64,000 nucleotides of DNA from Selaginella moellendorffii (Eukaryota > Plantae > Lycopodiophyta), in the NCBI RefSeq assembly GCF_000143415.4, contig NW_003314278.1, positions 140,371-204,370 of the forward strand, written 5' to 3'. Shown one piece after another: positions 57,380-64,000 of this stretch (its first letter is position 1; every line of letters starts with the position of its first letter). The notes below the pieces were generated by a model. It saw only the letters and a program-made list of their open reading frames with translations, was not told where the DNA came from and did not search any database. Position numbers and translations under genes: made by a program.

Positions 57380-59330
57380 GCCACAGTAGAGAAGCTAGGC
57401 CGTGGACGCGGCCCCCTTTCCTCACGTCCTCCACGTCCTACTTCTTGTAGTAGTGCGGCGCGATCTCCACAAGCCAGTCCTTCACCTCGATCGCATTCCT
57501 CATGTACTCCTTGGTGATGAGCACCAGCTCGTTGTACACCACCCACCGCGGCAGCACCTGCGAGAGGCCCGAGCCGGGAGGAATGTGCACCACCTGCGGG
57601 TTCCTGGTCCCGGATGTCGCGAGCCTGCTTCATGCTGCGCACCTGGATCGTAGCACCAGTTGGAGCTGTAGTTGGTCTCCTTCCACGAGTCGTAGACGCG
57701 CAAGCGCGATTCCGGAGTGGACGTTCATGCGGGCCGTGTCGGCGTGGACCTGATTGTAGAAGATGGAGCATCGCGGCGATAGAGATGATCTCCTTGCAGC
57801 ACTTAAGTTGAACATGCACACAACTAGGGCAGGTAGTTTAGTGGTAGAGCACTTGGCACCGGTGTAAGAGGTCTTGGGTTTAATCCAGATCCATTTTCCA
57901 ACATGGTGTGGTATAGCTTAGGTCTTGGGTTCAATCCCTAGTCTGTCCAGATCCATTTTCCAACAACTTGAACTTGTCCGGCGAAGCCACGATCATCTTG
58001 GACAGCATCAGGTCCAGTGGGAACTGGGCCATCCTCCTCCCCAGCTGGATCATTCAGCGAGCCCAGCGCATACAGCTGCTCCAGGGCCCTCACCAGCGTC
58101 TCGGCCAGTGGAAGTTGAAGTTCATGAGGTCGTTGATGCCCAGGCTCTTGAGCATGAGCACGATGTTGCCTAGGTTGGTCCGCTGGATCTCCGGCACCGT
58201 GTTGTCCTTCATCTCGTTGTTGAACAACCACTGCGTGAACGTGGGGGAACGTCCGCCCCACTCGTCCGGCTCTCTGTATCGCCGCCGCTTTGGAGATTGG
58301 AGCTATGATGAGCGAGCACCACCTTTCGTGCTCCAGGAGGAGTCTGCTCGAAGATCTTTGCTTGCAAGTCCGATGGAAGGTTGGCATAGATGGGACAGAT
58401 GATCAGCTCCGCTATCCTGGAACCGCTGCCTCGAGCTCCGTCAGAAACACGCCGGGGGGCTGCATGATGTGGATTTGCAGCACCGTCACAACGGCAGCGT
58501 CCAAGTACGACCTCCGGAGCCTTTGGTGAACATGGGATGTCGCCTTCCCGGAATGGTAAAGATCGGGGCGTCATCAAAGTACATGGAGAACTTCTCGGCG
58601 TCTAAAGTCGCACTGGAGGTCAGCACCTTGAGATCTTGCCGGAAGCGAGCTTGATGTCCTTCATCAGCCCGAACAGGAGGTCCGTCGAGATAAGCCTCGT
58701 CGACGATCATCACACTGTAGCTCTTGAGATCCGGCTTGCCGAGACAGCAGCTGTCATGTCCTTGAGCTTAGTCTTTTCCGAGGTGCAATCTTCAAACTGA
58801 ATCGAATACGAGCTTCGCATTCATCTCTTGGGCCACTCAAGCCGCCACACTCCGGGGTTGAGTGCACCCGATCCTTCCACCCTTGGTGTAGCCAGCTTCG
58901 TGAAGATACTCTCTCCCACTATCACAAGAACCTGGTACTGCTCTATAGTATCCGCCGGTATGGATAGATTGACAGCTTCTTTCTCTCCTCGAGAATGTGC
59001 TCGTGCTCTGTTTGCGCCAGCTTTCCTGCTCTCCTTCTCATCCTCGGGCTCGTTCTCGTCGGACATGATATCGGCTTGCACGAACGGACTTCACAAACTC
59101 GTAGTCGTCCTTGAGCTCCTCCAGCTTCTTGTCTTGCCTCTTCTTGAGGTAGGAATGGCGAAAGATCTTCCTCACCACTCTCCTGTAATTGCAAGCACCG
59201 CGAGAGATCACCGAAAATTTCTGATGTTGGCCTCGTCCCTCTCCTTCAGCCTGGCCTCCAGCTCTTCTCGCGCTGACGTCGCGGATCCCGGCGGCGTCGC
59301 AGCACGACTCGATCATCACCGCCATCACAG
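57380..59330 (-). pseudogene. DEAH-box splicing helicase (PRP2/DHX16/ESP3-like) pseudogene
   Basis: [54 protein letters not shown]; many deletions and frameshifts, no evident introns. Confidence 0.88.
57826..57966 (+). mobile_element. tRNA-derived SINE-like insertion
   Basis: A-box TAGTTTAGTGG, B-box GGTTCAATCCC, duplicated TCCAGATCCATTTTCCAACA; interrupts the helicase pseudogene. Confidence 0.5.
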
Positions 59331-59374
59331 CCTCGCCCGGCCGCCACTCCTCGATATTCTTTGAATTCTGACCA

Positions 59375-61586
59375 TTAATGTGGACTTGGCTTAAAATTGA
59401 TAATTATTCTACTTTTCATGGAAACGTCATATAAGAATATCCCTTCAACAATATTCTCATTCACGGACTGGATAGGGAGGTCTGTTGCACCGATAAGATA
59501 GGTAGCGATCATAGTTCCAAAATGCAAGGAGGTCTGTTGCAGCTACCCACGCTCTCCAGGTGGGTTCGTCCTTTATGACAAAGTGAACCTACAATTTCGA
59601 ACACAGAATAACAAAGGCATGTCTAATCCAGGGCAGCTTACCTCAATGGACGGTTTAGCACTTCTGAGTGCCTTTTGTACGCTTTCCACAGCAATCCGTG
59701 CCGCTTTATCCAGAGGAAACCTGAAACACAATGCCAACTCAGTATACAAGAGGTAAGGTGTGAGTACAAACCCGCCACATCCGCACGAGATAGCTGGGAG
59801 CGCTATGTGCTTAACGCCTTTCTTGCGAGCAAATGTTATAGCGTTCCTGTAGTAGCAAAAGCACAATGTATCAAATTTGCTACACACTCCGACATACTCA
59901 TAAGTGAGACCAAGTTGCTTGGCAGCTTCCGTCTCCATGTCTTTGAAGTATTTTGGGCCTCTAGTAATAATGATTTTAGGTGCTGGTAGTCCTCCTGAAG
60001 GGCTGAGAAACGAGTCAGTTAAAAGGTGGAAAACGAAATAAGGAAAGACACTTACATGATATCCAAGCCAGTAAAGCTCGACCCAGTGGCAAAACCTATT
60101 TCTGAAGAGAAAAGAAAAGACAGAAGCTCATGTCAAAATGCCAAACACCCCTTTGCGTTACCTCTGTGTATCTGACCTCCAACAGGAACTACAATAGCGT
60201 CCTTCCTTCCGTCCACAAACCACTCTTTTATGTCCCCGCTTTTAATCACAAACTTGCAAGAGCCGACTTTACAAACAAGCTTGAGGTCCTTTCCCTGATC
60301 AAAAGCCACTAAATCTCAAACCACGACCTCTGGAAAAAAAAAAAAAACAAGAGGGAAATTTGAAGTATTATTACCTTGAGGTCCATCACCTTTATGCAGG
60401 GGTCCCTAGGAGGTCCGGGATTGCAACAGATATAGGGTTCGGGTACTTGAGCGTTCCCATTGACTGAAAACAGTAATATGGTCATATAGCTATAATTGAT
60501 GTCCTGTACGTACCTAGGGGGCGGAAACCACAGGGTGTAACATCATATAACTCTATCATCGCTGTTTCGTCTTCGAACTCATCTTCATCTTCAGATTCAG
60601 ATTCAGATTCAGATTCAGATTCGTCCACAGGCTCGGGATTCATATCGATTGGGTCTTCCTCTCCATTGGCCACTTTCTGTCGCAGCAGCTCTCCAACAGG
60701 AACTAGTGCGAACGTCCTGCATTCATCGGTCCCTGCAGCAATCTGGCGGCAAGCTTCCTCGAGGCCCTGTACTAGTTCGCACATTACAAGCTCGTTTGAG
60801 GATCAAAAGTATAAAATACTCACCATTGCGTCAATCCGAGTGGTGAAAACGCTAGTATAATCGCCATCCATGTGACAACTCAGGTGCGCCAATGCAACGA
60901 GAAGATAGGTGTCTGCTGTAGTCACCCGCTCCTGCGTCCACCAAGCTTCCAGAATAACAAATTTCAACAAAAGAGTGAGTACCTTGTGGTAATAAAAAGG
61001 TTCACTGCTACTTTGCGGCGGGCTAGCATTTTTGAGACGGTAGAGAGAACTTGGACGGGTCAGCATCTCGTCCTTCCCATTTCGGCACAGCATCACCGAC
61101 GCAAAGGCCTCGCCAAACACATACACATGCGCATCTCCAAGCACCACCACCAAGGACCTGTTTTGCGCACACCAATCCTATAACCAGAACCAAAGCAAAC
61201 ATTTACAGCAACAGCAGTAATCACCACCACATACCCAGCAATCTGATGTTCCTACCACAGCCCGCAGCTCTTCATTCATCCTGCAAAAGAACCACCGATG
61301 TTTTGGAAAAGGTACAATGCACATACTCTTACTTTGTGAATGCGAGCTCCAGAGCTCGTGGAGTACCGAAAGTTGACAGCTCCAGAGATGCTCGAATGTG
61401 ATCCATGAGGCGAGATCGGCGTAACTTGAGAAGTTCGATATGTAGAGAATAGAGGTGAATATCTCTTACGCTCGGATAAGCTGCATGGAAAATTAACACA
61501 GCTCGCTCCTGCACTCTCCCCAGCTCCGGCAAGCACACGACATGCACAGTCGCATCCTGCGGCGGCTCGACTATCACTGCCTCCAT
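59375..61586 (-). CDS. chimeric protein: degenerate PP2C-like domain + acidic linker + degenerate Macro domain
   Basis: Manual GT-AG splicing gives one open frame: AFTKMNEEL, VYVFGEAFASVMLCRNGK, ERVTTADTYLLVA (PP2C-like); DESESESEDEDE; SGDIKEWFVDGRKDAIV, LPAPKIIITRGP, HIALPAISCG, FPLDKAARIA, VHFV (Macro). Confidence 0.65.
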
Positions 61587-61660
61587 CGCCCAAGCCCTAG
61601 GGTAATTTAAATAGCTAGGGAATATTCTATATTAACAAATGTTAAGCTTGTGTTGCCCTA

Positions 61661-63558
61661 ATGGCTGTCGGTATGGCGCCTTTGTTGCCTCTCACGCTGG
61701 ATGAAGCGTCCAAGGTCCTGGAATGGCCGATCGGCGTTTCTATGGCGCTCTCGGAGCTCGCGCAGGGCCCGGCGATCAGCCGCGTCTCGTCCGGAGAGGC
61801 CCTGCTGGATTACATCGTGGAGATGCGTCGTCTGGGCGGGATGAGAGATGCCAGGCTTCCGGCTAGGGCTGTGCAAGGAATGGGCTTGTTCTTCCGCGAG
61901 GTAAGCCAAATTCTTGATCCGGTTGCGCAAAAAATCTGGCTTCCAGCTCGTACCAGAAGATTTCTCTCGCGGATTCTTTGGCTCGTTGCTGCCAGCGATG
62001 GCTCAGCTCGCCTTGAGGCTGTCGGCGCTTGTCAAGGATCACATTGATGGCAGCGTGAGCGATCGTTTTCCATCACAACTGGATTTTTTGCAGCTGCGTG
62101 CTCTTCCCGCCGGACAAAGTGGCATGGTTTTGCTGAGCCAGGTAAAAGATTTCATCCATTTTCTTCTTTGAGTTCTTCATTCTCTTATGCCAGCAGATCA
62201 CCACCAGGAGCTTGTGGCATCGATTCTAGCGTGCGGGTTTTTCTGCTTGTATCCTTCGGCAGAGAGGAACAAATTGGATCTTCCCGACTTAAACTTCTAT
62301 AAACTCTTCATGTAAGTTGCACTGGGCTTTGTTTTTTTCCCTTTCTGTTTATCTGTTGCTTTTTGCAGGGCACTGGTTGATGAGAATCGAGAAGAGAGTG
62401 CCAAGCACAAGATCATATGCTTGTTGCATTACTTTCAGATTGTTTGTGAAAGCGTACCGCAAGGAATGATTTCTTACGAGCGCAAGGTGTTGTCTTTGGA
62501 ACAAGAGATGGAGGATCCTTTCTCTTTCTGGAGCAGTTCCTCGAGACCGCTGTGTCAAATACTGGTATTAGTCACAAGCCTTGTCAGCTCATTAACTTGT
62601 TCTCTTCTTTTCAGGTAATGGAAGATGGCACTATAGAAGGTAGTGATACTCCCGTTTTGGAGGTGGATTTCGCCAACAGGGTCTTAGGTGGTGGTGTACT
62701 CGGCGCCGGATGCTTGCAGGTAGACTTCTCTACGTTTAAAACCTATGTGAACAATTGTGACAGGAGGAGATTAGATGCGTAATCAATCCCGAACTGATCG
62801 CTGGAAGGCTTTTCTTACCGGCAATGCAAGACAATGAAGCAATAGAAATAGTCGGGACGCAGTGCTACAATCGATATGAGGGGTATGCCGAGTTTATCTT
62901 ACCACGGAAGCGTTCTAACTTCTTTTTCCCGATAGATATGCCTCGAGCTTTCGTTTTGCTGGAAAGTTCTTCGACAACAAAGCCAGAGATGCATGGGGTC
63001 GAAAGGAAACGCACATTGTGGCCATTGACGCTCTCCCGTTTCCGGGAGAAGCACAATTCGACGCTGCGCTAATGCTGCGGTAGGCTCTCGTTTTCGATAC
63101 TTTTTCGTTGTGACTTTTCTCTTTTTTTTTCTTGAACTTTTTACTGTACCAGGGAACTTAACAAGGCATATTGTGGCTTTCTCGTCCATCAGTCGATTCA
63201 ATGCGGTGGCTCGAGTGAAAGCACTCGTGGAGTAGCCACCGGCAACTGGGGATGTGGGGTCTTTGGCGGGGACCATGAAGTTAAGAGCATGCTCCAGTGG
63301 CTGGCTGCCTCGGAGGTAAGCATCTCTCTGTCGCAAAAATTCATGCTTTGGGACGATGAGAAACCTTTGCAGGCTGGCCGGCCCTTCTTGTTGTACTACA
63401 CATTCAAAGATCCACGTACCACGAAGCTCCAGAGAATAGCCGACTGGATTTTAGAACAAAAGTGGAGCGTCCTGGAACTCTGGAGCGTTTTGATCGAGTA
63501 TGGAAAAGGAAGGAAGTATACCAAGGTGGGATTTTTTGACTGGCTTCTTCCAGATTAA
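61661..63558 (+). CDS. PARG: poly(ADP-ribose) glycohydrolase
   Basis: VDFANRVLGGGVLGAGCLQ|EEIR catalytic motif, TGNWGCGVFGGD, LQWLAAS; multi-exon, frame intact. Confidence 0.96.
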
Positions 63559-63838
63559 TCGCAAGTGAAGACGCTGAGCTCCTCGCATCGATTTTTCCGT
63601 GAAGAACTGGGAAGAACTCGATGATTTGTCAATACGGAAGAAGCTCATGGTTAGAACAAAGAGTTCTTGGAATTTTTCTATATCCGGAGTACGTGGAGCA
63701 AAGTGAGATCCGTTCATTAACACTGTCGTAAGAGAGCATCCATTGAATATACTTTCTCTCGAGCCAGTAGTTTTTTTTTTCTTCGCATATATAAGGTGTG
63801 CCTTGGAGGACCGGTAGGGTTTTAGAGATCACGGCGCC

Positions 63839-63991
63839 ATGGGAGAGGCATTGCTCGACGCTGGGGGCGAATCGATGCTCCCGCCACAGGCGTTCCTGGA
63901 GCGGCTCAAGGATTTCGGGCAGGAGCACACGCTGGGGCGCTGGAAGGAGCTGAACGAGGTGGAGCGCGACGAGCTGATCTGCGAATTGGAG
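63839..63991 (+). CDS. UAP1: UDP-N-acetylglucosamine pyrophosphorylase, first exon (partial)
   Basis: PPQAFLERLKDFGQEHTLGRWKELNEVERDELICELE followed by a GT donor. Confidence 0.8.
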
Positions 63992-64000
63992 GTGGGAAAT

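Follow-up and report, generated by a model that had tools for sequence, protein, structure and literature searches.

A 64,000-nt stretch of the genome of the lycophyte Selaginella moellendorffii (contig NW_003314278.1 of assembly GCF_000143415.4, positions 140,371 to 204,370; hereafter the window) carries, head to head with a PARG gene, a minus-strand gene that joins what is very likely a diverged PP2C-like domain, through a linker, to a truncated macro domain. The reading that we favour, at a probability of about 0.6, is that of a transcribed, correctly spliced fusion gene whose PP2C-like part is probably dead, which belongs to a species-specific, fast-evolving and weakly constrained family and whose position beside PARG is incidental. 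The predicted product of 504 residues would consist of a PP2C/PPM-like domain without the aspartate of the LASDG motif, an acidic and variable linker, and a macro domain from which the first phosphate-binding loop and helix α1 are missing. As the LASDG aspartate is lost and macro loop 1 and helix α1 are absent, the two domains are most likely non-catalytic, and the protein, if functional at all, would work by binding. An earlier reading made from the letters alone (the sequence-only reading) had proposed a double pseudo-enzyme serving as an ADP-ribose reader or scaffold coupled to PARG; as a description "double pseudo-enzyme" appears largely right, and the coupling to PARG is not supported.

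Structure and transcripts of the fusion gene

The gene model (61586..59457) was assembled by hand, with frame and GT-AG ends checked exon by exon. It comprises 12 exons, separated by 11 introns that are 50-80 nt long and all GT-AG, in a 1515-nt open frame of 504 codons, running from the ATG at 61586 to a TGA at 59459-59457. The sequence-only reading had the single open GT-AG frame right, counted about ten exons and placed the end of the gene at 59375, beyond the stop of the checked model; all the strings that it quoted (IFHAAY, FGEAFAS, ALAHLS, (ES)n/ED, GDI, WFVDG..DAIV and PAISCG) are found in the exon translations. The database model of the locus, SELMODRAFT_412077 (P0015), carries identical exon peptides. 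An allelic model that is 98% identical, SELMODRAFT_407336 (P0001), lies on another scaffold, where UDP-sugar pyrophosphorylase, PARG and the fusion gene stand in the same order as in the window. The window and this second stretch (L002) are 97.3% identical and most likely represent the two haplotypes of the published assembly.

Reads and contigs from four public runs were placed on 59300-63700, and all counts of joints refer to the joints listed for this region. Eight of the 11 introns (introns 1-8) are present as cDNA joints in contigs of runs X17 and X1. The joint that makes the fusion, 60293 to 60374, occurs in an X17 cDNA contig at a depth of 15.3 with 90 letters on its shorter side, and corresponds to removal of the intron 60374..60295 through the acceptor gatcag/GGA (junction 60375/60294); variants in the X17 contig match the other haplotype of the fusion locus, not a paralogue. 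Splicing of the PP2C and macro exons to one another, which had been proposed to go through an acceptor near 60296, is thus seen in cDNA as well as in independent gene models of paralogues. The same intron holds a poly-T tract and an alternative acceptor at 60330/60329, use of which would give a product that stops after RSWFEI (stop codon 60311-60309). This site, put forward earlier as the stronger of the two, is present in the sequence and is used by none of the joints listed. No joint for introns 9-11 is among those listed, and the X17 depth is continuous across that part.

Two raw stranded RNA-seq runs, X23 and X24, cover PARG well and on the expected strand. Each of the few reads that they place on the minus gene shows fixed differences foreign to both haplotypes, and these reads depart from the window at 60661 to continue into sequence coding for VTQEVSGQLH, which is the linker insert of paralogues P0004 and P0010. 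Because of the fixed differences and the insert, these reads come from other family members, and the paralogues are thus expressed and spliced in the same way as the window copy. The 30-letter continuation of the reads at 60661 is absent from the window; a distant exon or trans-splicing at this point is ruled out, the continuation being the paralogue linker insert. The linker itself is an acidic (ES)n/ED run followed by a Pro/Cys-rich stretch in exon 6, its sole Pfam match is to low complexity, and the window copy is without the insert of 16-17 residues at 60661/60662 that all other full-length copies carry.

A truncated macro domain in the C half

The Pfam Macro profile (PF01661) matches P0001 with 55.8 bits (cut-off 22) and an E-value of 5e-15, over profile positions 46-118 only, and a paralogue model with an E-value of 1e-13, again only over positions 46-118; the window piece from exons 10-11, which includes PAISCG, scores 26.3 bits (E = 7e-6). 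Among PDB sequences the C half matches YmdB, macroH2A, PARP14, GDAP2 and MacroD at 1e-9 to 1e-6, in alignments that begin at or after the TGSS loop. Foldseek, given a low-confidence AlphaFold model of this half (predicted local distance difference test, pLDDT, 45), also finds macro domains, over about 100 residues. The AlphaFold alignments for both halves held near-identical paralogues only, and pocket geometry was not read from the models.

The window copy retains the GDI..WFVDG..DAIV strands and loop 2, PAISCGCGGFP. The distance from DAIV to TGSS is 14 residues (VPVGGQIHREIGFA) compared to about 40 in YmdB, and the roughly 26 residues gone between DAIV and the TG loop correspond to the segment with NAAN, the GGG loop and helix α1 in canonical macro domains. 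The exon translations of the fusion gene, exons 7-8 included, contain neither a NAAN nor a GGG motif, and no exon has been overlooked between DAIV and TGSS, because the cDNA joint 60162 to 60101 links exons 7 and 8. Pfam, the PDB matches and the exon translations therefore agree on what had been noticed in the sequence, a macro domain that keeps GDI, WFVDG..DAIV and PAISCG and has lost the NAAN...GGG loop. Loop 2 differs among the copies (SCGCGG, LCRYGG, SCGHGG and LRRCRG). When the macro half alone was used for a word search, it brought up one extra family fragment and no canonical macro protein.

About 5 kb from one family copy (P0014) lies a more canonical macro-domain gene (L005:15277-17675, plus strand; 637-aa model), which carries GDLSKWHVDGKYDAVV, then IAPGNKRLNTGPAVNAG, and ...LPVARVIHTVGPVY. 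Its start matches the W.VDG..DA(I/V)V of the family (46% of 24 residues identical), and the macro half may derive from a gene of this type.

Likely PP2C ancestry of the N half

The N half is very likely PP2C-like in origin, and this is suggested by three comparisons that are weak but concordant. In a feature search of the ESM-Atlas, by whose calibration a few per cent of such results may arise by chance, all ten of the best named neighbours are PPM/SpoIIE/PP2C proteins, with a top score of 0.94 and 160 shared features. Foldseek with the AlphaFold model returns PP2C structures for 46 of the 46 best PDB matches (best E-value 2.2e-3, template-modelling scores only 0.2-0.3), among them a TAB1 homologue (2irm) at rank 28, and the order of secondary-structure elements in this low-confidence model fits PP2C. 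For the third comparison, 30 PP2Cs were collected via a canonical PP2C gene that lies beside a paralogue, aligned, and set against the family alignment with hhalign, giving a score of 28.7 (P = 0.003) over 110 collinear columns. None of 100 column shuffles reaches this score (mean 15.1, s.d. 2.6, maximum 25.2; z = 5.2).

The hhalign alignment pairs VANVGDSRA with YVFGEAFAS and LASDG with VALAH, and its global mode pairs GSxDN with GTDEC. The sequence-only reading had described the PP2C motif order with three equivalences, of which ANxGDSR with FGEAFAS and ASDGLW with ALAHLS are exactly as hhalign gives them; the third, FDGHGG with IFHAAY, is ambiguous, the equivalent of the DGH aspartate being, at low confidence, in either IFHAAY or VRDIH. 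The aspartate of LASDG aligns with alanine in the window copy and with arginine or alanine in other copies, that of GDS with phenylalanine or leucine, and that of DN with glutamate in the window copy and aspartate in the paralogues. In PP2C, as in the structure of PPM1A, a metal is bound by the LASDG aspartate, and since this residue is replaced the N half is probably catalytically inactive.

The canonical PP2C gene beside a paralogue is SELMODRAFT_405953 (P0020; L004:10760-11701, plus strand), an intronless gene situated downstream of family copy P0013 at a distance of 590 bp. Its product gives no significant Smith-Waterman alignment with the N half (z = 1.3) and hhalign against that single sequence gives nothing; with no specific similarity, P0020 is not supported as parent of the N half.

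A species-specific family and its divergence

Word and hidden Markov model searches place at least 17 gene models in the family, all from S. moellendorffii and on eleven scaffolds, which amounts to some 8-10 loci per haplotype. Neither these searches nor the 1.84 billion representative proteins scanned with exons 3 and 4 yielded a homologue from another species. Five loci were fetched for comparison (L001-L005, of which L002 is the other haplotype). Copies with 12 complete exons and all splice sites are found in the window, L002, L001 (15133-17286, copy 2), L004 and L005. Two copies are broken, L001 6001-8149 (copy 1) by a frameshift in exon 1 and loss of half of exon 3, and L003 by a frameshift in exon 9, and L001 17422-18096 is a partial copy with exons 9-12 only. 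The window copy is without 33 nt before the stop that all other copies have.

Nucleotide homology between copies begins 4-5 nt before the ATG, includes the introns and fades about 20 nt past the stop, and the regions upstream are unrelated to one another. Carriage of the family by a transposon was considered and dropped: alignments of the copies' ends show no shared termini outside the gene body, these alignments being the only look taken for terminal repeats. Gene conversion could account for the sharp boundaries of homology, and also for the equal exon and intron rates given below.

Ratios of nonsynonymous to synonymous substitution (dN/dS) were estimated pairwise between copies by the Nei-Gojobori method. 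In exons 1-4, the N half, they lie between 0.16 and 0.47, around 0.4, and are significantly below 1 in most pairs (p down to 4e-6); in exon 7, whose protein is nearly invariant among copies, they are 0.2-0.6. Overall, the constraint is weak, and it is greatest on exon 7, the first of the macro exons, and on the pseudo-PP2C half. The macro core, where the ligand loop lies, evolves approximately neutrally among the copies.

The PARG neighbour and the shared spacer

The neighbouring gene is a canonical PARG, with its GGG-X6-QEE signature (GGGVLGAGCLQEEIR) and GNWGCGVFGGD loop intact, eight GT-AG joints in stranded RNA reads, and an allele on the other haplotype that is annotated with PARG_cat_N and PARG_cat_C. 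A junction from 62141 to 62197, found in contigs of X1 and X17 and in six RNA reads, retains 11 nt (ATCACCACCAG) and leads to a stop at 62227; the frame is open from end to end only with the acceptor 62207/62208, 11 nt further on (LSQ/ELVASILACGFFC). The former may represent use of an alternative 3' splice site yielding an unproductive PARG isoform.

The start codons at 61586 (minus) and 61661 (plus) are indeed 74 bp apart, as had been noted, and the core promoters of both genes must lie in this spacer; a functional coupling to PARG, as read from it, is not supported. The spacer contains TATTTAAAT and CCCTAGGG elements, and nowhere do the two haplotypes vary more, with five differences over its 74 nt. 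Apart from a short TAGGGCTT element found also in the two L001 copies, it has no relation to the sequences that lie upstream of the paralogues. Telobox-like elements (CCCTAGGG, AACCCTAA) stand just upstream of the ATG in the window spacer and in several paralogue promoters of L001, L003 and L005 that are otherwise unrelated.

Adjacency to PARG is found only at the window locus and its allele. Synteny with PARG is not kept in the five other family copies, which adjoin GDSL lipases, an aldo-keto reductase, RMI1 or an isochorismatase. The adjacency looks incidental, a feature of one locus in a compact genome and not a conserved functional pairing.

Weighing the explanations

A number of results weigh against the reading given at the outset, and most of them find a place in one of its rivals. 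The N half might be unrelated to PP2C, a domain specific to the lineage, arisen de novo or from another source, whose motifs resemble those of PP2C by chance. Pfam (PF00481, PF13672 and PF07228) gives no PP2C match even at E = 10, either with the exon peptides or with the complete N halves of the database models; phmmer and hmmsearch against PDB sequences yield chance matches or none, and no PP2C; exons 3 and 4 find only S. moellendorffii family members, and no PP2C, among the 1.84 billion representatives; and the alignment to the Selaginella PP2C is insignificant. The AlphaFold model of the N half is unreliable (pLDDT 38), and the Foldseek matches must be read as weak because they derive from it. 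hhalign reports a probability of only 10%, and the three lines of comparison read the same sequence signal, so that they are partly dependent and not fully independent. We nevertheless consider a non-PP2C origin decidedly unlikely, as the ESM-Atlas, Foldseek, hhalign with its shuffle control and the motif order of the sequence-only reading converge on one family out of thousands, the collinear hhalign alignment sets known PP2C motifs opposite the family, and the predicted order of secondary structure fits. The absence of a PP2C fold from profile searches, which that reading had taken as telling against it, is thus true for Pfam and PDB sequence profiles and untrue for profile-profile, fold and language-model comparisons. 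A more serious rival, though still an unlikely one, holds that the whole family is non-functional: a chimera of PP2C and macro gene fragments that was copied around the genome, was perhaps homogenised by gene conversion and is now decaying, with frames and transcripts as leftovers. This would fit the frameshifts or lost exons in L001 copy 1, L003 and L001 17422-18096, the large conserved segments lost from both domains, the lack of relatives beyond one species and homology that ends at the limits of the gene body. It would also fit the substitution rates of the macro core, where dN/dS in exons 9-12 is 0.5-1.5 and in no pair significantly below 1, and the equal divergence of exons and introns in three paralogue pairs (0.108 vs 0.101, 0.154 vs 0.169 and 0.135 vs 0.124), though both fit decay as well as a fast-evolving function. 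Also against the favoured reading, the window copy itself has no matching reads in the two sampled raw RNA runs (X23 and X24) and is at most weakly expressed in those samples. What argues for function is that at least five copies have all 12 exons in an unbroken frame with every splice site, that N-half dN/dS is significantly below 1 in most pairs, that the exon 7 protein is nearly invariant, and that correctly spliced transcripts occur in several runs.

The opposite view grants the gene more than the favoured reading does. The fusion protein could be an ADP-ribose reader or scaffold that shares a bidirectional promoter with PARG and acts together with it in ADP-ribose signalling, which we judge very improbable. 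With 74 bp between the starts the core promoters must overlap, both genes are transcribed, the arrangement is kept on the other haplotype, and loop 2 (PAISCGCGGFP), the DAIV aspartate and a residual GG in VPVGGQIHR remain in the macro half; given this GG, ADP-ribose binding may still be conceivable, a further point against the favoured reading. However, no other examined copy lies beside PARG, and the copies have unrelated upstream regions. The macro half is without the NAAN/GGG loop and helix α1, its loop 2 differs from copy to copy, exons 9-12 evolve nearly neutrally, and PARG depth is several-fold above that of the fusion gene in every run. The proposed ADP-ribose module with PARG is not supported, in view of a pairing limited to the window locus and its allele, unrelated promoters and a macro core that is approximately neutral. 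The present evidence reveals no new ADP-ribose signalling module, and adjacency of genes in a compact genome should not be taken as functional coupling. A further reading, speculative and improbable, is that the intact copies are Selaginella-specific double pseudo-enzymes in which a dead PP2C under purifying selection is joined to a rapidly diversifying macro module, serving as decoys or adaptors between phospho- and ADP-ribosyl signalling, for example in the plant's conflict with microbes that use ADP-ribosylating or PP2C-targeting effectors. If so, the near-neutral rate of the macro core would reflect diversifying selection and not decay.

Features of the region and neighbouring genes

Table 1. 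Coordinates of the fusion gene, its parts and its PARG neighbour in the window.
Feature	Position	Strand	Basis
Fusion gene coding sequence, exons 1-6	61586-61333, 61280-61235, 61177-60983, 60931-60824, 60766-60514, 60463-60375	-	hand model
Fusion gene coding sequence, exons 7-12	60294-60162, 60101-60056, 60002-59898, 59846-59772, 59720-59642, 59588-59457	-	hand model
N half (exons 1-4 and first 35 codons of exon 5, ~232 aa)	60662..61586	-	very likely diverged PP2C/PPM-like domain
Linker, including intron 5 (60513-60464)	60375..60661	-	exon translations
Intron 6 (80 nt, longest)	60295..60374	-	removal fuses N half and linker to macro exons
Macro half, exons 7-12	59457..60294	-	Pfam PF01661
Spacer between start codons, 74 nt	61587..61660		sequence
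PARG gene, 9 exons	61661..63558	+	Pfam PARG_cat_C (PF05028), RNA joints

Just 3' of the fusion gene, the stretch 58000-59357 (minus strand) is paralogous, at 77-90% identity, to two parts of L004, a DEAH-box helicase gene and the end of a gene of 751 aa. In the window DEAH has become DEAY and the copy is spread over several frames; it is possibly a decayed helicase copy, and the public model P0015 joins it to the macro gene. The window and L004 loci look like old segmental paralogues. On the other side PARG is followed, tail to head, by the start of a UDP-sugar pyrophosphorylase gene (UDPGP; 63831-64000, plus strand), an order repeated on the L002 haplotype.

Relation to known systems

A literature search and the Atlas clusters turned up no other fusion of a PP2C-like and a macro domain, and the architecture appears to be undescribed; in public records the N half is unannotated and the proteins are named "Macro domain-containing" or "hypothetical". 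A multi-copy chimera of two degenerate enzyme folds, found in one lycophyte and poised between function and decay, would provide material for studying the origin of pseudo-enzymes and of domain combinations.

As a head-to-head pair the two genes resemble those that share bidirectional promoters, with divergent starts 74 bp apart and both genes transcribed; unlike such pairs, the association of the fusion gene with PARG is kept in no paralogous copy. The macro half matches MacroD/YmdB, macroH2A, GDAP2 and the PARP14 macro domain over its C-terminal ~100 residues at E-values of 1e-9 to 1e-7, including the common loop 2 PAIS-G-x-x-G-(F/Y)-P, and in its start, GDI..W.VDG..DA(I/V)V, it is similar to the plant type. 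Compared with canonical macro domains it is ~26 residues shorter, and its loop-2 residues vary among copies and evolve nearly neutrally. The motif order of the N half is collinear with that of PP2C/PPM phosphatases, and its best fold and language-model neighbours are all PPM. However, it is only ~230 residues long, falls below the threshold of every curated profile, is without the RVxGxLAVSRAxGD hairpin region, has VALAH for LASDG and AFA for GDS, and was found in a single plant species, joined there to a macro domain. TAB1 is a PP2C-fold pseudophosphatase in which the catalytic metal ligands are replaced. The fusion gene would be related to it at the level of fold class only, and by analogy a role confined to binding would resemble those of TAB1 and of the non-catalytic macro domains of macroH2A and GDAP2.

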